Below the pieces are notes generated by a model, which saw only the letters and a list, made by a program, of their open reading frames with translations, was not told where the DNA came from and did not search any database. A stretch of 63,135 nucleotides of DNA, counting the filler, from Perkinsus chesapeaki ATCC PRA-425 (taxonomy: Eukaryota; Protista; Perkinsozoa), in the NCBI GenBank assembly GCA_013115145.1. It is 3 parts of 3 records of this genome, joined end to end, with 100 filler letters (N's around TTAATTAATTAA, not from the genome) between each part and the next. Parts side by side here need not be neighbours in the genome. Positions count along the whole stretch, not along the records: positions 25,733 to 54,685 come from JAAPAO010000462.1; 2 more parts are not named here. One strand, 5' to 3'. The position numbers and the translations under genes are program-made. Positions 25,632 to 55,087 of this stretch are shown here, one piece after another (within the stretch, counting starts at the first letter, position 1; every line of letters starts with the position of its first letter).

Positions 25632-26101
25632 ANNNNNNNNNNNNNNNNNNNNNNNNNNNNNNNNNNNNNNNNNNNNTTAATTAATTAANNNNNNNNNNNN
25701 NNNNNNNNNNNNNNNNNNNNNNNNNNNNNNNNTAGTGCTCCAAGCACACAATACTCTGCGTGATAATTTCGCTAACACTGATTCTACATGTAGAATCGTT
25801 ACCAGTATTCGCATGAGAGAATGCTATGTCAAATTGTGATATGACATATCAGATATGTACTCTCTTTTGTTGTTGCTCAAACCCAAGAAGGAGGCTTTTC
25901 TGATACCGTATAAATAAGTCGATGAAAGAAGATGAGGGGACCAGCAAGCAGCTTCGTGGAACTCTTGATCGGTCCTCATAAGATACTATCCTAATACTAC
26001 CGAGGCACGCACCATGTAAAGGTCCGACAAGGAGGCATGGCATAAAGTCTCAATAGCTCTCTTATACTAGATCTGATAATAAAAGCGATTCATGATCACA
26101 G

Positions 26102-26395
26102 TTATTCTTCGCGAGTGGTACAGCATGGGCAGTCGAAACCGCCGCAATTACAAATGTCTTCTGCGCATCCTGGCAGGTATATAGAGCCGCCGCATTCTCT
26201 GCATTTCTTGCATTTGACGTTTTCCTCCGCGCAACACGGACAACCCGAGCCACCACACTTAAGGAGTTTGAGGAGGCATGATGGAAAGTACGGAACACCT
26301 CCGCAGATCTGGCATTCGACGCATTCATCAGGATGCTTAGATTCGATGAATCCCACGAGAATGAAGCATACGATGGCATAGACAGGAAGCATCAT
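26102..26395 (-). CDS. Small secreted cysteine-rich protein with two internal repeats
   Basis: Signal-peptide-like MMLPVYAIVCFILVGFIES, then two aligned units CxxCxxCGGxxYxPxC...CGGxxCPCC; 17 Cys in the mature part; intronless. Confidence 0.8.
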   Translation of the reverse strand: MMLPVYAIVCFILVGFIESKHPDECVECQICGGVPYFPSCLLKLLKCGGSGCPCCAEENVKCKKCRECGGSIYLPGCAEDICNCGGFDCPCCTTREE

Positions 26396-37460: not shown

Positions 37461-38785
37461 CCATTAGGGAACGTGGAATTCTTACGGTTCTTATGGTGTC
37501 TACGTTATATCATGTATATCTCATAATAGAATATTATAGATAGTACTTACAACGTACGCAAGGTATCATGTGGTGCATTCAAAGTGCTTTATCACTGCAG
37601 CAGCAGCATAGACGACGACACAGTGCACACCCTCTCATGGAAGCTGATATATAGTAATAACAGAATGGAGATGAACGAATGAAGATACACTGTCTACCAC
37701 TAATATACAGACTACAGTAAGAAAAGTTAAACAAGCGTACATAGAATTTAATACAAAGATGACCGGAAGTTGATAGTAGATCATTTCAATACCAACGCGA
37801 AACTTGATTGATAGTCAACAATAGTAGTTTACTGAGTCCACAGCGATCACTCCTACATATCACTTAACTACTACTTTCCAAATAGTCTAAGCCTATGGCA
37901 TCGAACTTGAGAATCTATATCTAATGTTATTACGATATAATTATACAACATTACTAAGTACCGTCCAAATCACTGATTTAATCAACTTAATCAATTTGAT
38001 CAACTGACAAAAAATGAACGTTAAACTCTTTGTATTAGATGAGCTAGCGCTGGAAAACCGTATGTGATATAATTTTGTGGAGGGGTTTAGTAGAATACAG
38101 AGGTACCCTCTGTATTCTACTAAACCTTCTACTCACATCATCCAGTCCAGCCTCATCAAAGTCAGACCTCATACTCGTAGGGCTGTCGAAAGGAGGGCAT
38201 TCGAACCCCAATGGGCAATTGACCTGATATCACCATCTAAATCAGCCCCGAGCGAAAAGCCATTGCACTAACAATGTTCACTCAACATTGCAATCGTTTC
38301 GCGTTTGGTTCCGGGTCGGACGGATACCCCCACAAACTGAGTGGTATAGTTTGCCTCGCTAACATGTACATACGTTTCGCTGAATGCCCTCAGCGAGTCA
38401 TAACGATCATCATCATCATGCACTTTAAAGTAAGTTCTTCAAGAATAATGAACTCTCAGAGGTCTCACCGGTCCATCTATCCTCGATATATCCACACTTG
38501 GTGCCGGGGTGTGTACCTTCATATAAACAATAACAACTCGAGTTCTTATTTCATATCTACAACTCAATAAAGATGGAAGACCTACTGCATTTCTATAAGC
38601 GTGTTGTCTTCTCCCACCGCCGGCTCCGGCAGCAGCAGCCTCGCGCGCCTTCCCCTTGGGGGTTATCCAAGTATGAGTCTGCCATGGTGTACGATGCTTG
38701 TTGCGATTGTTAGGTGTTCTGGAGGTATGCAGCATTTAATAGTACTCAATTAGACCTCAAAAAGTGTGATAATGCTGGAGAATAA

Positions 38786-38857
38786 TTCCGCGGCCGGGAA
38801 TTGAACCCGGGTCTCCTGCGTGACAGGCAGGAATACTAACCTCTATACTACCGCGGA
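38786..38857 (-). tRNA. tRNA-Asp (GTC)
   Basis: TCCGCGGTAGTATAGAGGTTAGTATTCCTGCCTGTCACGCAGGAGACCCGGGTTCAATTCCCGGCCGCGGAA: 7-bp acceptor stem, CCTGC/GCAGG anticodon stem with GTC, and a canonical T arm. Confidence 0.97.
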
Positions 38858-40279
38858 ACTGAAAGTGAGTGCCATAAATCTAACTCGCAAGATTCTGGAA
38901 GTTTTTAACTTTCCGCACGAAGCTACACTCTCCATCCCCGAAAGTCAGTCCAGCGAACACTATACTTTAAGCCTTGAATCTAATCCACACTAATTTTAGC
39001 AACAACTCGCCAACTATCACCGCCAGAACAGTATTCATCACGCAGAACTCTCAAGCATCCCAGAATTGACACCAACTTCAAACAGCAGAAATCCGTCAGA
39101 TAATAAATTGTAACACAGAGTAATTAACAGTAAACCCGTCACAGTGGCCAAAAAGCGTGTCTTCTATCGCCCATCACACCGTTCGTTCGGCGACCGTGGC
39201 TGTTCGGTGCTTGTAGACAGTGTTACCTGAAAAATACACACCCGTGAGCTTAGTCCGTCATGAAATCTCAAGTTGCCGTTCACTGCTGTTAAAAACTACA
39301 GGCCGAAGAAGTTTTGCCAAATACTAAATTCAATGACAAAAACACTGTCGCTCTGCCTTCACGAAATGCCGAAGCATCAGATATGACATGCGAGCCCTCC
39401 AGCTCTCAATGCGCACTGCCGTGGGTGGCATCCGACATAATTAAGATTTCTAATGAATCCCTCTTGGTAGTGGGAACTCCAATATATTGTATATATTTTC
39501 TTACCGGCATCATTAACAGCAATCATCTCCTGCGCCGCCTTCCCGGTTTCCATACTATCAAGCTTATCGTATCCCTTATTATCCGATGGCTGACATGAAC
39601 AAGCGCATGACCGATCTCACCGGAGCAACTTGCCAATAATCGCAAGCCCCAGCCGATCCACTAAGGATTGGTATAGGTGATGATGGATAATAATAAGATT
39701 TTCAAAAAAACCAATAAGGCCAGGAATAAAGAACCAAACTGGTCGAAAAGATGCATGACGACTGTTGAGTAAGAATTCATTCCATACATGTTGAGTCGTC
39801 CCGAAAAAATGTGCTTCCGACATCGCAAAAATATTCGCCCTCCTCAAAGGCTATTCAGGAGAGCACATTTTTGGGAGGTCACCCTCTGCATGTTTCATCC
39901 CGCTATACGGAAGCAATCAGTGTGAAAAAGAATCCAGTCTTGAGAGTCGCGTTGGTCGCAGCGTTTATGTGGGCTTTGCCGGATTCAGAGGACGATCGGA
40001 TACATCTAAATTCTCGCTTCATCAACTGGAAGCTTCTCCGGCGAGTCCCCGAAAACAGGTGAATTCACAATGGTGATGTTCCAGAGGCTGTTTGTCGGCT
40101 GGGTTTGAATTTCTGACGCTGATTCCAGCGAATCAATTCATATTAGTGAAAGCGGGAGCGCACTTGACGTAGCTGAGCGGTCATACGTCGCGTGACATAG
40201 AATGAAAAAAAATCAAAAGTTAAAAATAACATTATATAAATTAATATAAAATAAATATTGTTAATTCCCAAAATACCTA

Positions 40280-43200
40280 TTAATTGCCATATCTACAACG
40301 CAGAGAGGCCAGAGACTTTTCCGGACTTGATAGAGTACAAGATGAACTCACCTCTGCGGGCTTCGAAGAATACATATATATCGCAACTATGACCAAGACA
40401 GCACCAATGATAAACGTCGGGCGAACTTCAAATCCGAGGAACAGTGCACTGATAGTCGTACCTGAACCAGCGGACTGACGGAAACTATCCGACAGCGACT
40501 TCGCGCCCCGGTGATGGTGAGAACTGCTCACACTGTCAACCTCAATTCCAAAGATACTCCCAAAAACTCACTCGATATAATTGCAGCTGCTGTAGCGAAG
40601 TTCTTCAGTATTGTATCGGCGTATTTGATCACAACGGCGACGATGAGGCCGCCGCCAGCTTCAAGGAAGATTGTCGCTAAGAAGAGGGAAGTAACAAAAA
40701 TACGCGGCTTATAGTTGATTTAAGTTCGCAGCAAAAAATGATGATGACTGATGAAGTCATCCATCTTAGAAAAGTTCCGGCCAAAGACGTTTAGTAAATT
40801 ATACACTCGAGAGACTCCCTTGAAAATATACTATCAATACACAGTAACGCTTAGCCTTAAAAGCAGCATGGGCTATACAGTGATCAATTGCCCTGTGAAA
40901 TACAACCCTACAGCTCACTTGTATTCCTCTCACTGTCAGGGAGATATCCTCGCATGAGATTCCAAGGCGAGATCCAGAGACGCGCAAATTTGGGCCAAAA
41001 ATGGGACAGGGAGATTTTTAGAGAGTTCGGCCTGCGCAACAAGGTTTTCAGAATAATATTGTTATATGACTTACAGTCGAAATTTCAGCTCAAAACTCGC
41101 CATAAGTTAAGGACTTCTCGCACTGAAGAGTTTCGACCTCTCTAGATTGCGCGTACTGTAGCAAATTCGCGCCACACCAAGGAACTTTGCAAAGCCCAGC
41201 GAAGCTCACAATGCTCCAAAAATGAACAGGAATCTCGTAGATTCCCACTATAGTAAAGTCGAGCCGATTGTAGTTCCGGACACTAATAGTGTCACACTAT
41301 CGAGTAAGAGAATACGGAAAGGCATACTAGCGGAATAGTACAGCATTTCCCGGTCATGCTTCCGACACGCGCACTGATATTTCCGAGACCGCGAGCGAAT
41401 ATGCGCGCGTCACAAGTATTTCTGTTTTTTCTGTATTATGGTCATTGCCATCTGAACGTTATCTGTAGTGGAGCCGACTGTTACAAAATTAAATTATCCC
41501 GAAAGTCTCTTGGCACACAACCGAATGCAAGACTTGCCCACTATAGCTTACTCCATGTGAGAGGCGAGTAACCATAGAAAAAGCCATTCTGCCTCAACGC
41601 TGTATGGTCTTTGATAAGCATTGTACCTGACGAACATTGTACCTTAGCGGAGCGAAGCCACGGTCTTACATATAGCGCTCGTGGACGCGAAACTTGCTAG
41701 CTGGAAATTCCGGACCCAAAGTGTGTACGGCTTCTGAACATTCGGTGCACCCTAAAATGACCAAAACTACCCGACGGCATTCCAAAACGATTCACCGACA
41801 CCAGCACACCATTGAACTCGATGAAAGAAGCCTCCTGGAATCTCTTCATGCTTTCTATCACATTGTAGTGTTCTACTAGCGACCTAGGTTATGAAGTGTG
41901 CTGTTGGTGCGGAAACCTGTTATAAAGCTCGTTACTGCTTCGAGAATCACGGAAATGGACTCCTCTAAATTATTCCTATTGCGGAGCTGGTCCACCGATA
42001 AAGATATGTCGCATAACGATGTACCAGTTGCGTTCCTCCTTATGGATACTAACCGAGCTTTCCTCCAGACTTACATCCTTCCCGAAGCTGCCTCTCTTCA
42101 ACATATACTCGAAATAGACAGCTGCAAAACCACTGGTCATACAGGCGAAGAGAATCGCGATGATGCCCACCAGAAGGCCTAAAACGTTGCTTGCAATTGT
42201 CGAGCTAAAAACGTATATCAACCGAGCAACAAAGACACAGTATGAAACCTACCAACTCGATTGTATCAGCAATATTAAACCTAGATAATTATACAACTAC
42301 AATGTGTGACTCACACGCACTTTCCATGAATGCTGAAAAGACACTGGCGAATGGTCTTGTTATGAGTGTCGTTTCACAGATGATCTCGAGTCGGCGTTAG
42401 TTCAAGATTTGAGGTTGAGGGTCTAATAGGAAGTGTGTAGATTTCGAACAGATTTCGATGAGTCTCAACAGCCTCTAGTATGGCTCCACTGTATACCGTT
42501 CGCGTGATCTTGAGCCACAGATCGATTCAGAAACGATAAACGAGCGGAGTGCAAAGAACTTGCCACTCAGGCGAGGATCGACCGAACCGGCAATCAGAGC
42601 AGTAGCTGGAATGAACCGCAGCTTTTATTGAGGAATGTCCTACGGATGCATCCGGGCAAATCGCAACTGACATTTCTAATTCCACTTCACTTTTCTTACT
42701 AGCATTGTCCTTCTGCGAACTGTCGTCCTTTTCCTTCAATTGTGACAGTTGTACGATCGATACACCAATGAGCAATACCTACACTTTAAAGTTCCACCAA
42801 TTCCCTCCAAACGACTTACAATCAAACTTAACACCTGCTTTTGTGAAAGCCTTTTGTGAAGTATCAAAACGGAGAACAACGCGGTCGTCAGAATCTTGCC
42901 CTGACACAAAACACCCGGATTCCGCGGAGTAAAAGTCTGGTCCTGTCCGATGATCAGCAGGACTGCTGCAATATCAATTAGACGGAGAATTCATACTTGA
43001 ATTGATATTCAGTGATTAACAAAACTGAGATCTCCACCAATTTCATTTGGACGTTGATACCCCCACAAATAGCATTAAAAGGCTCTCCCGTTAAGTACTG
43101 CAGGGATGTGTATTCTTCGGCGAGAGTCAGGCGTAGCCGGCGAGAAGTGGGTATGGTGAAATTAAATCAAAGGTTGGCACTACATTGGTGAACGAAATAT

Positions 43201-44660
43201 AGCTAAGCATGACATAATCTGATTTAATGGTTAAACCTGTTAACTCTAGTTCTCGCGTATCGACATTTTAAGGTTATTCTCAATTAATTCGGAGCACTGT
43301 AGTACGATGAGTGGGCGATTCAGAAGCCTACCTGATAGGTGATTTGGAAAACCGCAGCTTGCAGGTGAGTAATAGCGAGATACAAGGCATTCTTTTGTAT
43401 GGCATAACATATCGCTGGAACACTCATCTTCACGTAGTCAGTGAAGCTCGAGAAAACTTCTGTCCTGAAGAGAACCGGGCAAACTTATGTTGGGAATGCT
43501 GAGACGCGACGGGAAATAAGAGTAATTGTAACTATAAGTGAGGAAGAGTTTAACTCTTAGAGTTATCCCCATTATGAATGTGGAAGAGTTATCCCCATTA
43601 TGAATGAGAAAGAGTTATCCCCATTATGAATGAGAAAGAGTTATTTCCATTATGAATTAGGAAGAGTTATTTCCATTATGAATGAGGAAAGGTCATTTTC
43701 GGCGATTTTTTCCGCACTGCTTTTCTCCGACCTACTTCCAGAAAAGCCTCAAATTTCGGAACGACCATCGGATTCTCTTGGTATTCTGAAAGAACGCCAA
43801 CGTAATTAACAATGTACCTGAGAGCAACTATACGTTGAAACAATCAACAGTTAGACATTTGAGCACGGCAGTATTGGCGGGGAGAATATAATATGTATCC
43901 ACCCGCTATTACGGGTACTATACGCAACTAGATCCATTTCGTGTATAAGCTTGCTTAAGCCAGCATTAATTTTCTAGTTTCGTATTACTATACCCTAGCA
44001 TACAGTGTGTTCAATTGTTATAGTCCAGAACCGAAAAATGTAATAATTTTACCATCATCAATATATCATTTTGCAATTAGAATGAATGTATAGTACCGAA
44101 GTATTCTTATTAACCTGCGGTAATTAAAATAAATGTAGAGTACCAAAGTATGCTTTTAACCTGCGGTAATTAAAATAAATGTAANNNNNNNNNNNNNNNN
44201 NNNNNNNNNNNNNNNNNNNNNNNNNNNNNNNNNNNNNNNNNNNNNNNNNNNNNNNNNNNNNNNNNNNNNNNNNNNNNNNNNATAGTACCGAAGTATGCTT
44301 TTAACCTGCGGTAATTAAAATAAATGTATAGTACCGAAGTATGCTTTTAACCTGCGGTAATTAAAATAAATGTATAGTACCGAAGTATGCTTTTAACCTG
44401 CGGTAATTAAAATGAATGTAAAGTACCGAAGTATGCTTTTAACCTGCGGTATAGGAGCTGAAATTCCTTCCACTGTGGCTTACATGTTATCAGCTTCGTC
44501 GTCTCATCACATACCACAGCCGTACTCGCCAGGAACATCGGCCCCGGCCTCGTTCGGGCATACCGCATCGTCAACACCAGTGCTGAGAAACAGGTAACAT
44601 ACCAGAGAGAATACATAGCAGACAAAAGCCTAAATCTTAGCGATGATTTCTCGTCGACTA
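40280..44660 (-). CDS. Nucleotide-sugar transporter, SLC35A family (UDP-Gal/UDP-GlcNAc/CMP-Sia-like), multi-exon; 5' end uncertain
   Basis: LVLTMRYARTRPGPMFLASTAVVCDETTKLITC; GKILTTALFSVLILHKRLS; LIGVSIVQL; SGFAAVYFEYMLK; GGLIVAVVIKYADTILKNFATAAAII; FIIGAVLVIVAIYMYS. Confidence 0.9.
43559..43689. repeat. Intronic minisatellite, about 5 units of 26 nt (aagagttatccccattatgaatgagg-like)
   Basis: Directly visible tandem units with gradual divergence (cccc to ttcc). Confidence 0.9.
44085..44450. repeat. Intronic minisatellite, 46-nt unit, interrupted by an N-gap
   Basis: tatagtaccgaagtatgcttttaacctgcggtaattaaaataaatg is repeated on both sides of the gap at about 44185-44281. Confidence 0.95.
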
Positions 44661-47600
44661 GTAGCCGTGCTGAAAGGTGATAAAGTAATAACTAATCACG
44701 GTATGAACAGACATATACTATACGAAGCACACACCCAAACCACATTAAGCGATTTTAAGATACCCCACAATCGGGAACCGAGTACAGCGATGCACTAAAA
44801 CAACACTCCTCGTTTTCCTAGTAGATGCTTCTTATGCTTGGTAAGACATTAATAATATACCATCACAAACAGAAATGTTCCCTTCGACTTCCCACGGAGT
44901 ATATCCGCCCGACTACGGTGTCAGAGACTCTGACCGCCACAGGCAGCTTATCTCTCAGCCATTCTTCACAGTCAAGTAGCGTGTTTCTCTATATCACCTG
45001 TTACTTCGAATGCGCAGAGGGAAATGATTTCCTTCTCGTGATTCTTCTAGCGCTCACAAGCTTGGTAGTGCCATTCTTATTTGGAAATTACAAAGTAAAG
45101 TAGGTTACCGAGTTGGCACTTTCCAAAACGATGTTTTCCCACTTTAGTGAAGATGGCCAACATTCAATGGTGAAAGGTTCAAGCACCAATAGTATTTTTC
45201 CTTTATGAATATCCAACGCCATTTGCCCTACTTACCAGTATTCTGCACAGTGAGTACCAAAAGTGAAAGATATCTAGGTTGCAAAAGGTGACTAATAGGA
45301 ATCATATCCGAAGTACAATAGAAACGACAATGACAACTGCTGCTAAAGGAATCTTTTCACGTTACCAGATGCATGCTTCAACATCGCTCACTAGCGTGGC
45401 TTCACCGTATGCTTATTTTCTCAACTACTCTCGTTCCGACCCAGTTGTTCATTCGCCAATCAAAGTGTGACTCAATCTGCGCTTTCTCCAAATGTGATAA
45501 TTTTTCAAAATCCAAAAGTCTGCGAATACCATAAACCATTTTACGCAGGATTGTACCGAAGATTTGATGAGATTCTGAATTCTTAACTCACCAACATGAT
45601 CGCCTCAGCTTCCATAAACCATCTTATCGACCTAGCTCGATTTCAAAGATACGCCACCACCGCACTATAAAGAATCTGCATTTAACCTCTTCGTTATCCC
45701 CTCAACAATCACGCCCGTTATCTCCCCATTGAGGAACTGACTCCAACGCAAGCAAGATTAAGGAATATGATAGCACTATCGATACGCCTGGTATCCAATA
45801 ACATTACCGTACTCATCTTTATGAACCACATTTACTGGCCTCCTCCACAGTCTATTCATCAAGGCAAATGCTACCCATACACTGACATACGAGGAATAGA
45901 ATAATGACTATCAAGTAACCGACAACAGGCCTCAGACTCAAAGGCTTGGAGGTGCTACTATTGGACTTCAAGATACAATAAAATGTTAATAGTTGGCAAA
46001 TACATTGCTAAATAGTAAAGCATAGAATGACTAACTGTCATACTAGAATTATTGCCTTACAACAAAACTAATGCAAACGATGCGTACTAAGATATATTAA
46101 AACGCTCTAGCGTTCGCTCGACTGTGCATTTTACCAAGCTGAACACTCTCTGACGAGAGTCTTCAACTCACGGAAATAGATAGATAACGAATCGACGATG
46201 CTTCCCCACTACTACTATCACAACAGAACTAGGCTGTACATTTTGTGTAATTGTTACAAAGTAATATAGTTATATTGTTACAAAGTAATATAATTATAGC
46301 AGTTTTGTTATATAAATGATGTAATCATCCATCAACTGCAGTAACCTGCCCTTACTACCCGAATACACTGGCAAATACAAGACCAAGTTGGCTTGCCCCT
46401 CCACCACCACCGTCAGGAGGAGGAGGAGATCCTCGTCGATGGAAAGTATCCTAAACAGCAGTCTTATGCACGGATCAAGCAATGCGCTGTAACTATATAT
46501 GTAATTGATAAATAAAGTATAAACATGACTATATATTAGTAAATATGAATATATAATTTCACCTATCAACAATAGACATTATCCTTTCCAAAAGGTCCAA
46601 AAAGTATTTTTCTAGACAAAGAGGAGACGTCGAATGCATTCCCTCTGTTCCTAACGTGTGATGTTTTCCAACGCCCATGACTATCATAACGGAAGGCCAT
46701 GCCGCATAACCACAATAGATGGCCCGCCTATTGGGCGTTCCTAGGAAGTAGAGTCGTCTGCCAGAGTTGAACAGTTTTGTCATTAGCTAATAATAATATA
46801 TCGATCAACCGTTTCATTCTCATTTCTGTATCCTTCCCACACCGAACCGACTCCCGCCTCCCGACGCCAAAGTCACGCTGTCATATGCAGACAAAAGAAA
46901 ATTACTTATTACGCAAGCTATTAAATTCGATAGGAATTCTTCAAATTCAAAAAAAAAATCTAACGCTCTTCCCGCTCTGATGAATTTCCGAAGAACATGT
47001 TTTTGTCAGTTGAAGGATACTCCCTCCTGCCTGCGCACGCTAAATATTGTGATAAGTACTATCTTAGTGCATATCTTTGCATTAACGGTTTCATGTACCA
47101 CTCATGTGGACCGATACTAAGTATATAAAGCATTGGATAAGCTGCTCTCAGAGCCTATCCTGTTGGGTTGAGTATCCTAACACAATGAATATTGTCCCCG
47201 TGTGTGCTATAAGCTGCGCTAAGCTAGAAAGCTACTGTGAGCAGTAATAAGTATTAAGTTAGGTGAATTGTATCTTAGAGCCTACTAAGTGTTGTGATTT
47301 ATACCCTAATAAGGTTACACTATCTCTATTCCCCATCCGCTCCACAGTCCATCGATCATCGACACCATCTACCGACTCCCGCCCAATTACCCCCCTCCTC
47401 ATATCACCTGATGAGCCTCGCTCTGTTCCGGCAGGCTTTCCCTTGTTTTCTGTAATGAAGTTCGCCAAAGGCTCTTTCTAGCCCCCAGGTTGATTGTTGA
47501 TCGGCTGAGCATTCGAGTGGTGGGATATAACAGCCATGATGAGGTTCTAGATAACATAACAAAACCACTATTGCACATGAAATCAGATGACAAATTTCGT

Positions 47601-48202: not shown

Positions 48203-48634
48203 TCACTTCCTCGAGCCAAACATTTTTTTGAAATTAATTCCCTTCTTGAATTCAACAAAGACTTGTTTAATATCCTTATCATCAATAGGAACAGCCTCCT
48301 GCAACCTTCTTGAATCCTCCTTGCTCGGGATCGACACGTGATCCAGACTCCCCCCTCCACAATCTTTACCGAGCGCACAAGCGTAAGTTAAAAACTCACA
48401 GCCACTAACATCTTCCAGAAGACGACCCTTTTCGATACCCCTTTTCGCCCGACCCGATAAGAATCTGTTGCGAATCCTGCTCCACCCACCTCGAACCCGC
48501 CGCGGAGGACCTTCCAAAAGAATGTCGGATAGATACCATGAAGAATACTTCCGCTGGATGTCATCCACCTCCATTGCACTCGTCGAGGAATCGAAGCGTA
48601 ATGAAGAAGAATGATACAATGATTTCCATCGCAT
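48203..48634 (-). CDS. Unknown family 'X', copy 1 (possibly degenerate)
   Basis: C-terminal block FLTYACALGKDCGGGSLDHVSIPSKEDSRRLQEAVP...EFKKGINFKKMF is shared with copies 2 and 3. Confidence 0.45.
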   Translation of the reverse strand: MRWKSLYHSSSLRFDSSTSAMEVDDIQRKYSSWYLSDILLEGPPRRVRGGWSRIRNRFLSGRAKRGIEKGRLLEDVSGCEFLTYACALGKDCGGGSLDHVSIPSKEDSRRLQEAVPIDDKDIKQVFVEFKKGINFKKMFGSRK

Positions 48635-48810
48635 TTTTTTTTTTGCATTAACAACACTAAAAGGTACCTCAGTATTCCCATCAGAGGAACAACCGTCTTA
48701 GAACAATCCTCAATTAAAGCACTGCCCAGCAATCAGAAAAAGCAAAGCACGTTCAAGATACAGTTTTGAAATGCAGTTTCACAAACATCCCTAATCAACT
48801 CTGTTCCTTT

Positions 48811-49615
48811 TTAGTAACACCCAACTTTCCTTAATGACCCCCTACTACCAATATATTTAAATCCAACCGCTTTATACGCCCTTATAGCAAATTCATTGTC
48901 CGAATCAACCCTTAACCAAGCGCCTTTCGCTTCTGGGTGTGCATATTCGACCTGTAGGAAACAATTATGACACGATTGAAACACGCCCTCCCCACGGCGA
49001 TGAAACATGGAAGCGTGGAATCCACAGCTGCCATAGGTGTGCCAAACATCATCATAACTTCAGCGACATACTTACAACTATGATACAGGTGGCGCTGTTG
49101 TATAATTAATTTTAATGTACTACTCATTATAGGAATCAAATAATGGAATTAATCAGTTATATAACTGAGATTTAATAAGTATTCGGTGATGCTTCCATTG
49201 TGCAATTTCCGATCCTCCAGATATCTTACAAGTTTAATAATCCAATAAATCATCCTTCTAGCCACACCTTTCCTCCTCCAATCCTTACGGACATTTACGT
49301 GAGTAATATAAATCCATACCTTATCTTTATCGGCAAATCCAAATTCAACAGATCCGCAAACCGACTAAAGAATATTATCGATCAAATCGTCCGTTTCTGC
49401 ATTACATTATCCTTGGTGTCGATAGCTACAGCCAACAAAGTTTCATTATACCATTTATAGTTAACATCGGGTAGGTCCAAGAATGTGCCGACTCGATCCG
49501 CGGGACGTGATAAACGATAATTGACTTTCGAAATATCCTTCTCCACCGACCGTATTGAAATGGCAGATGAAGTGACAACAAGGATTAGAATGAGAAGGTT
49601 GATGAGCGTCGGCAT
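48811..49615 (-). CDS. Signal-peptide-bearing GNAT-family N-acetyltransferase, copy 1 (3 exons, 161 aa)
   Basis: Exons 49406-49615, 49230-49364 and 48811-48951 join in frame: IYITHVNVRKDWRRKGVARRMIYWII (GNAT motif A) and AWLRVDSDNEFAIRAYKAVGF (motif B). Confidence 0.85.
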
Positions 49616-50952
49616 AATAAATGACTAACTCTAAAATGATAGAGCAGACGAAAGCAACTTGTCATCTACTCCTATGAAAGAGAAAGACATCCCTGAGGGG
49701 GGGGCGATAACCAAGCCCTGGCTCCACGTGAAGAGGGTCATCTTTGTACCCTCAGCTCCACGAGGCATTTCGCCTGGTGACGGGAAAGCCCTTTCCGCTT
49801 GAGAGTCTTCACGCAACACAGATTCTCCGGAGGCGAGCGGCCCATTTTCGCTCATTCTGTAAATAAACTATTTAGTTTCATTATCTCATCGGAACGTCTG
49901 ATTCAGACGTAACTTGGATACAAATCAGAGCGACCGGTTTTTCATTCTTTGTTCTGGAAACAATTTTTATTTTTCCTCGGAAAAATAGCCACTCCGTTAA
50001 CAAGAGGCTTAGAATGGAGGGAGGCTCTTACAGATAGTGCAATACGTTTGTAAAGCTCAGAACGGATCTAGTATTCATGAGGTCGAGAAGAAACCATAAA
50101 AATAGCTAGCTTTTGTATGACCCTACCAGGGATCGAACCCGCTCCTTTCTCGTCTGGGGGCATGCCTCAGTAGCAATTATCTGCCTAGACCTCCAAATGC
50201 ACTACACTTGTACTACTTTATTACCTTATCTCAGCTCTGATAGTATCCATCTCTATGATGCACATAATTTAAGACTTTAACCCTACTTCAGCAAAATTTC
50301 CCTATTTTCACATTTCTCCGTCTTTGTCGTATTCGACAAAGGAATTTTTTCGTATTAGGAATAAAAAATAGGGAACGAAAGAATCGACATTTTTCTTTTA
50401 ATCGGCCACCCTGCATTTGACAACTATTTGCATTACAAGCAGATGCAAAGACGTTACTGAAACACCTATAAATTGCACCAGAATTATACCAATTAACTCC
50501 TTCATTTTTGGAACGAAACATAACCCTCAATCACAGACGACACCTCGACATCTTTAACATGCTCACGCGAACAACAACAGGTAACGTTGAAATACACCAT
50601 ATTGAAATAACAAGAAGAGCATGACGTAAATATAATCATATATAGATGGGAAGGAACGTAATGTTATACACATTAAGATGGCCACGAGATGAAAAATGGA
50701 CATATTGGTAAAGATGATGGACCATGATGATGCGATGAGGGAAATGACGAAAATATAAATCCGATCGAAAGTCAATTACTTATTCCACAAATGACAACTG
50801 CAGATAGGATAGAGCTACGTCATGAAATTAAGTATTCATATAACTGTGATGAACTCAGATTGGTAAGCTTAAACTTCAACAGATTTCGCCTCCATCAAAC
50901 TACTTTATTTTCAAACAGTCCGTCCACCCGTAACTCTAAAGTACATCATCAT

Positions 50953-51210
50953 TCACAATTTTCTTGTTCGTTTTGGGTTCACTTTCCCCACAAAACTCTT
51001 CCCTGACTTCCCCGAGTTGAACATTTTCCTGAAATTAACCCCTCTTTTGAATTCGACCAAGTTTTCTTCAATATCCTCGTTTTTAGTAGGAACAGCCTCC
51101 TTCATCCTTGTCGAATCCTCCTCGCTTGGGACCGAGACGTGATCCAGACTCCCTCCTCCACAATCTTTACCGAGCACACAAGCGTAAGTGCCGAAATAGC
51201 GATTGCCAGT
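50953..51210 (-). CDS. Unknown family 'X', copy 2 (last exon; upstream part degenerate)
   Basis: YFGTYACVLGKDCGGGSLDHVSVPSEEDSTRMKEAVP...EFKRGVNFRKMF. Confidence 0.45.
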   Translation of the reverse strand, partial: TGNRYFGTYACVLGKDCGGGSLDHVSVPSEEDSTRMKEAVPTKNEDIEENLVEFKRGVNFRKMFNSGKSGKSFVGKVNPKRTRKL

Positions 51211-51624
51211 CTCTGGAAAAAATATGAAACATTCTTTAATCTCAATAAAAGTAGATTATTCTCTCTCTTGCATGCGGAAAACGCGTTTCAGAAGATACTT
51301 TCGATGTCCCAATAGGGGAAGACTATTAGTAATAGCTCCGACGCCTTATAGTCCAACGATTATCAAAACATAGATTAGTTGGTTAGAATAGATTAACTCC
51401 TTTTCTCTTTGATCCCTCTATTGTTATCGTCATTATCACTTAAGAAGATAGTGTTGGGTTACTAAGCGTATTACTCATTCCAGTGCTTAAAAGGCAGTGT
51501 AATACACCGTGCTGCTCAAGACTATTCAACGATATTCAACAAGTGCATGTGATAAAGAAATACGATAGTACGATCGTAACGATACAAATGCTCCGTGACA
51601 ATTCTAAATCAAAGCATCCAAGAA

Positions 51625-52593
51625 TTAGGAGAACTGGAATCCCTCAGACTCTTCTGAGGACTTTCCACTGTTCCTTAATGACCCCCTACTACCAATATCT
51701 TTGAATCCAACCGCTTTATACGCCTTTATAGCAAATTCATTGTCCGGTTCAACCCTCAACCAAGCGCCTTTCGCTTCTGGGTGTGCATATTCGACCTGTA
51801 GGAAACAGAAGATACAATATAATAGAACTGAACTCCCCTCTCCCTCGCTTCCCTTCATCATTATGAACAACGAAATCAGATCAGTGGGTATAATTCACTC
51901 GTGACAACTAATTTGAGTATGACTTTTCACGAAAGTGATTATAGAAATGGGATAATGAAATTTTCATACGCGACAAGGGGCAAATACTAATGCTGCCCTT
52001 ATGTAGTATATATATGCTATGAACTTCATAGCACGGTTGAGCTAAGCCATAGTATGAAGCTCAACCGTGATATAATCGATCAAGCTATGGCGTCGGGATC
52101 TCTGGGAACTACTTGCACGTCCAACGAATTTGAGTTTTATATCAACTACTAAGTGATGCTTCCAGATTTGCAATCATGTGCATTTTCCGATCCTCCAGAT
52201 ATATTACAAGTTTAATAATCCAATAAATCATCCTTCTAGCCACACCTTTCCTCCTCCAATCCTTACGGACATTTACGTGAGTAATATAAATCCATACCTT
52301 ATCTTTATCGGCAAATCCAAATTCAGCAGATCCGCAAACCGACTAAAGAATATTATACATCAACTCGTCCATTTCTGCATTACATTATCCTTGGTGTCGA
52401 TAGCTACAGCCAACAGAGATTCATTATACCATTTATAGTTAACTTCGGGTAGGTCCAAGAATTTGCCGAATCGATCCGCGGGACGTGATAAACGATAATC
52501 GACTTTCGAAATATCCTTCTCCACCGACCGTATTGAAATGGCAGATGAAGTGACAACAAGGATTAGAATGAGAAGGTTGATGAGCGTCGGCAT
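51625..52593 (-). CDS. Signal-peptide-bearing GNAT-family N-acetyltransferase, copy 2 (3 exons)
   Basis: Same exon structure as copy 1, with intron 2 at 51796-52207; THVNVRKDWRRKGVA and AWLRVEPDNEFAIKAYKAVGF. Confidence 0.85.
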
Positions 52594-53247
52594 AATAAAT
52601 GACTAACTCTGAAATGATAGAGCAGACGAAAGCAACTTGTCATCTACTCCTATGAAAGAGAAAGACATCCCTGAGGGGAGGGGGCGATAACTAAGCCCTG
52701 GCTCCACGTGAAGAGAAGGAAGTTGTAGTCACCAGAACTCCACAGGGGACACTCGGATTGTGTACTTGCACAATTACAGTGGTCTAGGGCAGGGTAGTAA
52801 AGGTTCGCCATACGTGTTGAACCAACTGATATGTTAATTTATTCAACCTTTCGGCCCACTACGTAATATGTAGTACCGCTTGAAGCCTATAATAATCATA
52901 TTAACAAAATACCATTCCTCATTACAGACACCTCGGCATTGTTAACATGTTCAAGAGAGAAGAAATAAAACTGAAAGTCAAGTAAAGCACAATAAACATA
53001 TCCGATCACATTGTATGGAGCAGCACACCGTTCACATGGGACATGATAAAAGATACCACTTGTGAAGCCAAATGTGATATCTATGATGTTGATAATAACA
53101 GTTAATAAATAATGAACTTGATCCATGATGAATCGAAGCAACCAGGGATTTTCTTGACATCATTCTGATAACAAATGGATTATTTATTCACCATAATTGG
53201 CGGCGAGATAAATCTGCCTCACTTTTATTTGCTCTTCATTTCCACCA

Positions 53248-53520
53248 TCAACTCGAAGGAAAATACTTCTTAAAGTTTTTGCCATTTTTAAATTCGTCGA
53301 GGAAATCTTCAAGATCGCCATCCTCATCCTTTATTTGAGGCGCATCTTTCAGTATTGTCAAGTTCTCATCGCAAGCTGATCCGGACTCCAGATCACGGAC
53401 TATGCGACCTCGATTCAATGGGTAACCGTATGAACAAAAGTACCAAGAATCATTAATATCATCGGCTCCTAAGAAAACAGCATCGATGAAAAAGATAGGC
53501 TCTCGACCATTGAGTGTCAT
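53248..53520 (-). CDS. Unknown family 'X', copy 3 (diverged)
   Basis: WYFCSYGYPL...LKDAPQIKDEDGDLEDFLDEFKNGKNFKKYF aligns to the end of copies 1 and 2. Confidence 0.4.
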   Translation of the reverse strand: MTLNGREPIFFIDAVFLGADDINDSWYFCSYGYPLNRGRIVRDLESGSACDENLTILKDAPQIKDEDGDLEDFLDEFKNGKNFKKYFPSS

Positions 53521-53637
53521 TCACACTGTCGATCTACCGAGTCAGGAAGCCACAAGGGAACATCACATATTCAAGCCAGGAAGAATGCATTTGATTCTCC
53601 CTTCCGGTGTAGGATCGCTTGCTGTGGCGGATTGCTC

Positions 53638-54379
53638 TCAATTGGATCCTAATGTCACCAACACACTTCGATCCCCCGATAAGTTCCCGGCCATAGCCAA
53701 GTTGTGCGAAGTTGTATTCCTTCCCGGCCCAACTACCAAACGCCTATTGATAATAGTTGTTTGGTATTCATAGTAGTACTTACTACCAATATATTTAAAT
53801 CCAACCGCTTTATACGCCTTTATGGCAAATTTATTGTCCGAATCAACCCTTAACCAAGCGCCTTTCGCTTCTGGTCGTGTACATTCGATCTAAACAAACA
53901 AATAATTAATAATAACGTTGGCGTTGCTTCTAGGCTCGACAAATTCCAACCTTTCAAACCCGGCAGGTTCGATTCCACCCGAGGGTATATTACATATTTC
54001 ATAACCCAGTAGAGCATCCTTCTAGCCACACCTTTCCTCCTCCAATCTTTACGGACATCAACGTTAGCAATATAAATCCATACCTTATCTTTATCGGCAA
54101 ATCCAAATTCAGCAGATCCGCAAACCGACTAAAGAATATTATAGATTAAATCGTCCATTTCTGCATTACATTATCCTTGGTGTCGATAGCTACAGCCAAC
54201 AAAGTTTCATTATACCATTTATAGTTCAGCCGGGGAAGGTCTAGATCCTTCCCAATTCGATCCGCGGGACGTGATAAACGATAATCGACTTTCGAAATAT
54301 CCTTCTCCACCGACCGTATTGAAATGGCAGATGAAGTGACAACAAGGATTAGAATGAGAAGGTTGATGAGCGTTGGCAT
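53638..54379 (-). CDS. Signal-peptide-bearing GNAT-family N-acetyltransferase, copy 3 (3 exons; C-terminal end uncertain)
   Basis: Intron 2 at 53890-53993; IYIANVDVRKDWRRKGVARRMLYWVMKY and IECTRPEAKGAWLRVDSDNKFAIKAYKAVGFKYIG. Confidence 0.85.
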
Positions 54380-55087
54380 AATAAATGACTAACTCTGAGG
54401 CACTGCAAATGAGCATGTAACAGAGTGAGGCTTCCAATAAACCAGAATCGTCATTTCTACACCTCCCGACGGCATCGAGGACTCTCTTCGAAAGGGGGGG
54501 GGCGCGTGCTCAGTTACTCAACAGTAGTGCACGGCGGCGTTGGAACCTTCTAGTCAGTGGCAGACGCACTCGTACAAAAGTGCTCCGTCCCTTCCGTCTC
54601 CAAATTCCTCCTCTAAAAATGTGTTCTCGGAACGAGGCATATTTGAGGGAGAACCAACGGGAGAAGTAAATCAGAATTCTGTCAANNNNNNNNNNNNNNN
54701 NNNNNNNNNNNNNNNNNNNNNNNNNNNNNTTAATTAATTAANNNNNNNNNNNNNNNNNNNNNNNNNNNNNNNNNNNNNNNNNNNNTATGTTACTAGTGAT
54801 ACGGAGGAGGAGATATAATAGAAAGGAGTTTGATAGGAAATATGTTACTAGTGATACGTTCAAGTTAATGCTCAATCAGCCTTTGTATCTGTGCGCACGG
54901 GAATGAAACTCTCGGCGAGCAAAGTGTCCAAAAATTTCGGAAAATTTCTCATTTTTCAGTTTTCTGAACATTCACTTTTGCGGTGAAGGAAACCAGGAAA
55001 TTTCCCGACATCAAATCGCATCGATTTCACTTCGATTTAATCATTTTCTTGCGCGCCACAAAACTATTTCAACATTTTTGTTCTCAG

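Follow-up and report, generated by a model that had tools for sequence, protein, structure and literature searches.

GNAT acetyltransferases are nearly always cytosolic or nuclear enzymes, and members of this superfamily in the secretory pathway are rare. Signal-peptide GNATs are already known from cyst nematodes, where the Hg-GLAND1 gene is present in a single copy and was acquired from actinomycetes (PMC4828791). Lumen-facing GNATs have likewise been described in animals and the Apicomplexa; animal NAT8, TgNAT8 and Pf3D7_1437000 are held by transmembrane segments, with a GNAT domain that starts about 100 residues into the protein (PMC10038149). In the Apicomplexa, secretory-pathway proteins are N-terminally acetylated in the endoplasmic reticulum (ER) by a still unidentified enzyme, and none of the candidate N-acetyltransferases of P. 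falciparum presents an apparent signal sequence (PMC10038149). Here we describe a tandem trio of GNAT genes in the perkinsid Perkinsus chesapeaki ATCC PRA-425, the products of which open with a leader that looks like a cleavable signal peptide. The trio lies on contig JAAPAO010000462.1 (28,953 nt), which occupies positions 25,733 to 54,685 of the 63,135-nt stretch of DNA analysed here (the window, along which all positions are counted unless another contig is named).

The three paralogs are encoded on the minus strand, with start codons at 49615 (copy 1), 52593 (copy 2) and 54379 (copy 3), and the first 23 residues of their products, MPTLINLLILILVVTSSAISIRS, are identical. In every copy the first three exons measure 210, 135 and 106 nt. 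Exon 1 (49406-49615, 52384-52593 and 54170-54379 in copies 1, 2 and 3, respectively) harbours the leader in its first 18 codons (49562-49615, 52540-52593 and 54326-54379), followed by the region from beta1 to beta2 of the GNAT domain, and in copy 1 its frame is open from the ATG to the GTAATG donor. It is separated from exon 2 (49230-49364, 52208-52342 and 53994-54128) by a 41-nt GT..AG intron (49365-49405, 52343-52383 and 54129-54169) that in all copies has a GTAATG donor and a TTTAG end, and that in copy 1 is in phase 0. Exon 2 contributes beta3, beta4, motif A (RRKGVA) and alpha3, and encodes the VRKDWRRKGVA signature of the family. Intron 2 spans 278, 412 and 104 nt in the three copies (48952-49229, 51796-52207 and 53890-53993), and leads to exon 3 (48846-48951, 51690-51795 and 53784-53889), which encodes LRV..DN.FAI.AYKAVGF and comprises beta5, alpha4 (motif B) and beta6. 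A preliminary description of the locus had proposed a tandem expansion of three paralogs with a common start, the 41-nt intron exactly where it is found in copy 1, a second intron of variable length, and the V.VRKDWRRKGVA and LRV..DN.FAI.AYKAVGF motifs, and our analysis bears out each of these elements. Exons 1-3 are 89-99% identical between copies, without a single indel, and intron 1 retains 90-93% identity, whereas introns 2 and 3 cannot be aligned, presenting random-level identity and hundreds of gap columns. This contrast between exons 1-3 and the two later introns places the trio beyond chance.

The same description had derived proteins of about 160 residues from these exons, but such models are incomplete. 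The three-exon products (161, 171 and 198 residues) run into non-homologous sequence directly after ...AVGFK(Y/D)IG and end some 12 residues or more past motif B, lacking strand beta7. In each copy, a second conserved open reading frame (ORF) is present downstream on the same strand, and five lines of evidence lead us to propose that it is the last, fourth exon of each GNAT gene. A GT immediately following ..IG and a phase-matched AG allow the downstream ORF to be spliced onto exon 3 in every copy, yielding four-exon models of 219, 236 and 223 residues for copies 1, 2 and 3. The candidate donors of intron 3, all of which keep the frame, are G|GTAGTA and A|GTAGGG for copies 1 and 2, and A|GTAAGT for copy 3. 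The positions and phases of all three introns of the trio are shared with the genes for KAF4649293.1, a P. chesapeaki paralog with 39% identity, and KAF4700284.1 of P. olseni, where the third intron interrupts the Gly codon of ..IG/..KG in phase 1 and is followed by an exon for the terminal strand and the tail. Exon 4 aligns with this terminal strand, and the spacing from GF to the strand is 9-12 residues in our models, as against 11-12 in the homologs. Furthermore, between copies 1 and 2 exon 4 presents a synonymous rate (dS) of 0.51 and a non-synonymous rate (dN) of 0.23, with a dN/dS ratio of 0.46 (Fisher p=0.023), and the exon-4 acceptor proposed here for copy 3 coincides with that of its GenBank model.

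Structure prediction with AlphaFold2 (AF2) is consistent with this assignment. In KAF4649293.1, beta6 falls at the exon 3/4 boundary and the last exon provides beta7 (residues 141-150; predicted local distance difference test, pLDDT, 87-88) and two C-terminal helices (residues 181-197, pLDDT 87-88), while in copy 3 the exon-4 segment WYFCSYGY forms the last strand (residues 186-193). The proposed exon 4 of copy 1 (48203-48411, after an intron 3 at 48412-48845) would thus supply beta7, a linker, the C-terminal EFKxGxNFKK helix and the stop codon through a phase-1 junction like that of the KAF4649293.1 and KAF4700284.1 genes. That of copy 2 lies at 50953-51212, after an intron 3 at 51213-51689, and contains the conserved stretch YFGTYACVLGKDCGGG, and exon 4 of copy 3 (53248-53468) encodes WYFCSYGY, linker, C-terminal helix and stop. 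The possibility that exon 4 is a gene of its own was rejected, because in copy 2 no ATG precedes the conserved YFGTYACVLGKDCGGG stretch in this frame and the homologs carry the segment as their last exon. The array had originally been delimited to 48811-54379; with exon 4 included, it reaches down to 48203. The GenBank model of copy 3 additionally includes a mini-exon of 25 residues (about 53657-53734, minus strand) that has no counterpart in copies 1 and 2, constitutes an insertion with respect to every homolog and is modelled by AF2 as disordered (pLDDT 33-40), and which is probably spurious.

The trio consists of GNAT-fold proteins of the Acetyltransf_1 superfamily. The Pfam Acetyltransf_1 model (PF00583) matches the annotated copy 3 protein with 43.8 bits against a gathering cut-off of 20.7 (E=3.6e-11), the paralogs score similarly, and exon 2 of copy 1 reaches 22.9 bits by itself. 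The motif A pattern R/Q-x-x-G-x-G/A is located between beta4 and alpha3 and reads R100-R-K-G-V-A105 in all three copies; R100, K102, G103, V104 and A105 are invariant across three aligned family proteins, and so is the motif-B Tyr141 in the family alignment. Fold and structure searches were performed with the database protein of copy 3 and with the paralog KAF4649293.1 as first and second models. The GNAT core of copy 3 was predicted with pLDDT values of 75-86, and KAF4649293.1 (pLDDT 76.9, predicted template-modelling score 0.76) displays the full beta1-beta7 sheet. The complete mixed sheet, with alpha3 and alpha4, is present, and includes beta7 only when exon 4 is taken into account. Foldseek searches against solved GNATs returned a probability of 1.00, with RimI, NAA60, ArsN, phosphinothricin acetyltransferases (PAT) and SpeG as top matches and E-values too close to choose a GNAT subfamily. 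Structural neighbours in Swiss-Prot are similarly mixed (MCC1, Pat, NAT14, NAA40, NAT9, NAT8/camello and NAA60). The nearest AlphaFold DB clusters bear A0A7J6-series accessions like that of copy 3, one of them named NAA60 and several comprising multi-domain GNAT proteins, which suggests a lineage-enriched GNAT set of presumably Perkinsus origin. Motifs, models and structural matches hence uphold the GNAT identity initially read from motifs A and B, and acetyl-CoA-dependent transfer is the putative activity of the trio.

Relatives of the trio were identified within Perkinsus: KAF4649293.1 (P. chesapeaki, 197 residues), KAF4700284.1 (P. olseni, partial) and the triple-GNAT protein KAF4668425.1 (452 residues). 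All three share with the trio the clade-specific VRKDWRRKGVA, and the first two also have introns at its three positions and a C-terminal helix of a similar kind, but as annotated they are leaderless, and their identity to the trio is 31-39%. No relatives outside Perkinsus were found in the searches made of proteins, prokaryotic genomes and JGI metagenomes, which included family-motif pattern scans of 185,579 prokaryotic genomes and of the metagenomes. An exact look-up of the 77-residue exon-1 ORF gave no match, nor did word-indexed searches of proteins for which exon 1 and exon 4 served as queries; these carry little weight since their length window shut out full-length kin. Carboxypeptidase-propeptide clusters returned by a protein-atlas search with exon 1 (scores up to 0.73) fell below the reliability level of the tool and were discarded. 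The end of contig JAAPAO010001590.1 (positions 2431-2503 of the KAF4649293.1 locus), which carries the KAF4649293.1 gene, overlaps the right end of JAAPAO010000462.1 (54613-54685 of the window) by exactly 73 nt. Because of the orientation of this contig-end overlap, the KAF4649293.1 gene probably lies on the same strand about 1 kb upstream of copy 3, as part of a four-gene array split by the assembler. The array is a real and fairly ordinary lineage-specific gene family, with three, probably four, tandem genes.

The conservation pattern differs markedly along these genes. In exons 1-3 dS ranges from 0.02 to 0.25, whereas exon 4 gives a value of 0.51 for copies 1 and 2 and saturation in comparisons with copy 3; the overall dN/dS with respect to copy 3 is 0.34-0.44. 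Because exon 4 and introns 2 and 3 are highly diverged while exons 1-3 remain alike, the duplications would be old and the leader and catalytic core would have been homogenised between copies since, with gene conversion suggested as the simplest cause. Homogenisation limited to exons is nonetheless hard to obtain from contiguous conversion tracts, which would have to skip long introns. Intron 2 itself is unalignable over a fourfold range of lengths, flanked on both sides by exons of 89-99% identity. Amino-acid differences between copies are clustered in residues 32-59 (alpha1-alpha2), at the exon 2/3 junction of copy 3 and in exon 4 (beta6-beta7 and tail). The acceptor site of GNATs, N-terminal acetyltransferases among them, is flanked by the alpha1-alpha2 and beta6-beta7 loops. 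As the differences sit in these loops, the paralogs may combine one cofactor chemistry with different acceptors, and the comparison suggests a diversification of substrates among them.

The leader is the sole hydrophobic segment of the trio proteins, and its DNA (the first 54 nt) differs by one synonymous change among the three copies. It lacks a charged n-region; its core, LINLLILILVV, spans 11 residues with a mean Kyte-Doolittle value of 3.4, and T-S-S-A comes next, placing small residues at -3/-1. Under classical signal-peptide rules such a segment is a cleavable signal, cut after Ala18. Judged by its sequence, the leader thus looks like a signal peptide of residues 1-18, with predicted cleavage after Ser-Ser-Ala. 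The preliminary description had already read it as cleavable, a reading that stands as regards hydrophobicity and the -3/-1 rule, although the segment could also be an uncleaved anchor. Leader and beta1 are encoded in the same exon and frame, with beta1 about 12 residues past the predicted cleavage site and aligned with the extreme N-terminus of the homologs annotated as leaderless. Plastid targeting by a signal followed by a transit peptide was rejected on these grounds, since a transit peptide would not fit into the short distance to beta1. All three copies retain an N-x-S/T sequon at residue 57.

The similarity of copy 3 to copies 1 and 2 starts exactly at an AG located 15 nt upstream of the ATG. 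This AG and the conserved 15-nt block just 5' of the ATG (49616-49632, 52594-52610 and 54380-54396, minus strand) could correspond to a spliced-leader acceptor or to a 5' untranslated region. In Perkinsus, a spliced leader is added to mRNAs by trans-splicing (PMC2868825), and the AG may be the acceptor for this process; the leader ATG would therefore be the first in the mRNA. The gene for KAF4649293.1 (JAAPAO010001590.1, positions 128-169 of the KAF4649293.1 locus) presents a comparable arrangement, with an in-frame ATG 13 codons upstream of the annotated start, no stop codon between them and an AG 8 nt before the upstream ATG. Initiation there would add a hydrophobic N-terminus of 13 residues, MFIPLSCLLFGLS, weaker than the trio leader yet apparently signal-like, and the annotated start of KAF4649293.1 may be wrong.

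Taken together, we consider it probable, without great margin for certainty, that the trio are secretory-pathway GNATs that acetylate an amine there or after release. Each unit would consist of four exons and encode a pre-protein of some 220-236 residues, with a predicted signal peptide (residues 1-18), a minimal GNAT domain (beta1 near residue 31, the R100-A105 loop, Tyr141 and the exon-4 beta7), and an acidic linker followed by the basic amphipathic helix EFKxGxNFKK. The leader would take the nascent chain into the ER and be cleaved there, and the mature enzyme would act in the secretory lumen or be released, the latter being possible because no KDEL or HDEL is present in the trio proteins. 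An acetyl group would then be moved from acetyl-CoA to an amine, be it a protein N-terminus, a lysine or a small amine, and the paralogs would perform the same chemistry on different substrates. A lumenal and a secreted role are not separable here, but the former is at least as likely as that of a host-directed effector.

Several observations weigh against this reading of the trio as secretory-pathway enzymes. Two small RNA runs of P. chesapeaki do not contain the locus, and every sequencing run in which it was found is DNA. A soluble acetyltransferase outside the cell would have no obvious supply of acetyl-CoA. In addition, the summed Hessa free energy of residues 3-21 is about -0.65 kcal/mol, marginally favourable for insertion, and since this mostly apolar stretch of 18-19 residues is hydrophobic enough to span a membrane, the N-terminus could be an uncleaved signal anchor tethering an ER/Golgi GNAT with its domain in the lumen (type II, NAT8/TgNAT8-like) or in the cytosol (NAA60-like). 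AF2 draws a single helix over residues 2-28 of copy 3, NAA60 structures are among the top Foldseek matches for both models, the C-terminal helix, which is conserved, basic and amphipathic, could rest on the membrane, and apicomplexan ER-resident GNATs are held by transmembrane segments, not signal peptides (PMC10038149). We nonetheless regard an anchor as somewhat unlikely: the strictly hydrophobic core extends over only 8-11 residues before T-S-S-A, in the -3/-1 arrangement typical of cleaved signals, Foldseek E-values do not set NAA60 apart from SpeG, RimI and ArsN, and no charge asymmetry around the segment fixes its orientation. Further observations against an array of three working secretory enzymes come from copies 1 and 2. 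Their intron-3 donors fall off the GT[AG]A pattern of the 12 other donors read and differ from the GTAAGT of copy 3, their frame stops after 11-21 codons if intron 3 is retained, and GenBank holds no GNAT model for them. Moreover, because dN/dS between their exons 1-3 is about 1 (0.96), they could be decaying, yielding products truncated before beta7 or none at all and leaving only copy 3, perhaps together with the divergent upstream paralog, as functional. Such decay, which would be compatible with the other readings, appears rather unlikely, given that the 0.96 ratio stems from only 13 changes (3 synonymous and 10 non-synonymous), that all four exons of both copies are intact, with no frameshifts or stops, that their exon 4 has been under constraint since they diverged (the dN/dS of 0.46 given above), and that a chimeric gene model, described below, explains why they were left unannotated.

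The preliminary description had suggested exported enzymes that acetylate host proteins, amines or antimicrobials or, as an alternative, enzymes that act in the secretory lumen. As host-directed effectors, the trio would be released from trophozoites. Several features fit the effector idea: the leader is signal-like and no ER-retention motif is present, the genes are amplified in tandem, and the paralogs differ in putative acceptor-site loops. P. chesapeaki is an intracellular parasite of bivalves (PMC2868825), and the signal-peptide GNAT candidate effectors of cyst nematodes, such as Hg-GLAND1, offer a precedent (PMC4828791). Yet dN/dS values of 0.34-0.46 are not above 1, and there is no extracellular acetyl-CoA. 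To our knowledge, no route into the host cytosol has been described for Perkinsus proteins, and the literature on Perkinsus retrieved with acetyltransferases, signal peptides or secretomes does not treat any secreted Perkinsus acetyltransferase. Host-directed effectors are thus a speculative and distinctly unlikely explanation, and secretory-pathway GNATs acetylating an amine in the lumen or after release are the reading that we prefer.

When exon 2 was compared, without a profile, with 1.8 billion representative proteins, a 249-residue protein was returned, the first 151 residues of which are identical to exons 1-3 of copy 3. This protein, annotated as "N-acetyltransferase domain-containing protein" of P. 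chesapeaki on contig JAAPAO010000462.1, is KAF4659213.1 (A0A7J6LJ93), and this identity, from the N-terminus encoded in exon 1 onwards, establishes that copy 3 was already public in GenBank and UniProt. In GenBank, neither copy 1 nor copy 2 has been given a GNAT model. That part of the JAAPAO010000462.1 record contains just one further gene call, which starts at the copy 2 ATG and spans more than 9 kb downstream, and its 489-residue product contains solely nucleotide-sugar-transporter domains. A nucleotide-sugar transporter gene, outside the GNAT family, is indeed located at 40283-44691 on the same strand, about 3.5 kb downstream of copy 1, with six collinear exons that match PF04142 positions 12-315. 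Because this gene is complete by itself at 44691-40283, its fusion to the copy 2 start is almost certainly a prediction artefact in which copy 1 was swallowed by a giant "intron", and this chimeric model accounts for the absence of GNAT models for copies 1 and 2. The earlier claim that the genes had been hidden by splicing hence holds for these two copies and not for copy 3. The present analysis corrects the public annotation with respect to two genes without a model, one chimeric model in which a sugar transporter is fused to a GNAT start, and an exon that is probably spurious.

Other features were noted on the contig. The Golgi/ER transporter lies close to the leader-bearing GNATs, and an assembly gap (a run of N at about 44170-44300) lies within its gene span, just downstream of the first matching exon, flanked by repeats and with the peptide YFNYRRLKAYFGT encoded on both sides. 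A 97-residue ORF at 26105-26395 (minus strand) opens with a hydrophobic N-terminus, after which come about 24 cysteines at repeated CGG/CPCC-like intervals; no Pfam model matches it, and it could encode a small cysteine-rich secreted protein. A tRNA-Asp (GTC) gene at 38785-38858 (minus strand) was called by ARAGORN and by Rfam (65.7 bits), and the piece matched no other RNA family. Stretches resembling a tRNA T-arm (GGTTCGAWYCC) are present at 50113-50135, between copies 1 and 2, and at 53960-53990, within the second intron of copy 3; no tRNA was called at these positions by ARAGORN or Rfam, and they may be remnants of tRNA-derived repeats.

The array provides testable candidates in a perkinsid, and transformation and genome-editing tools exist for P. 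marinus, a relative of P. chesapeaki. Secretory-pathway GNATs are relevant to how parasites modify host proteins or their own secreted proteins, and to which enzyme acetylates protein N-termini in the ER of apicomplexans and their relatives. It is very unlikely, in our estimation, that the trio represents soluble ER-lumen-resident GNATs delivered by a cleavable signal peptide, a type not yet identified in the Myzozoa. Were the ER-lumen reading true, however, perkinsid signal-peptide GNATs, with RimI and NAA60 among their structural neighbours, would constitute a template for the search for the ER enzyme.

Compared with known systems, the trio conforms to the GNAT superfamily in fold order (beta1-alpha1-alpha2-beta2-4-alpha3-beta5-alpha4-beta6-beta7), acetyl-CoA loop and motif-B tyrosine. 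It differs from solved GNATs in a very short alpha1-alpha2 region, in an identity of only 10-26% in structural alignments, and in the addition of an N-terminal secretion-type leader and of a 40-60-residue tail ending in a basic helix, which has a hydrophobic moment of 0.45-0.53 and is predicted with confidence only in KAF4649293.1. NAA60 (NatF) is the top Foldseek match for the model of this paralog and among the top ones for copy 3, with SpeG, RimI and ArsN reaching equal E-values. Like NAT8/camello, TgNAT8 and Pf3D7_1437000, for which a GNAT domain facing the lumen of the secretory pathway has been proposed (PMC10038149), the trio may expose its catalytic domain in that compartment, but it lacks the NAT8/camello architecture, with a GNAT domain about 12 residues after the leader, where NAT8/camello proteins have some 100 N-terminal residues that include a transmembrane segment, and its identity to NAT8-family members (17-22% over the core), like its structural similarity to them, is no better than to unrelated GNATs. 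In architecture, on which alone they were compared, Hg-GLAND1/FAM7 of cyst nematodes and the predicted trio proteins both join a signal peptide to a single GNAT domain in a parasite (PMC4828791). Against the background of these systems, the motifs and models presented here amount to a modest family description, in which the trio is set apart from Hg-GLAND1 by having no bacterial relative among our matches, by its tandem arrangement and by introns shared across the family.

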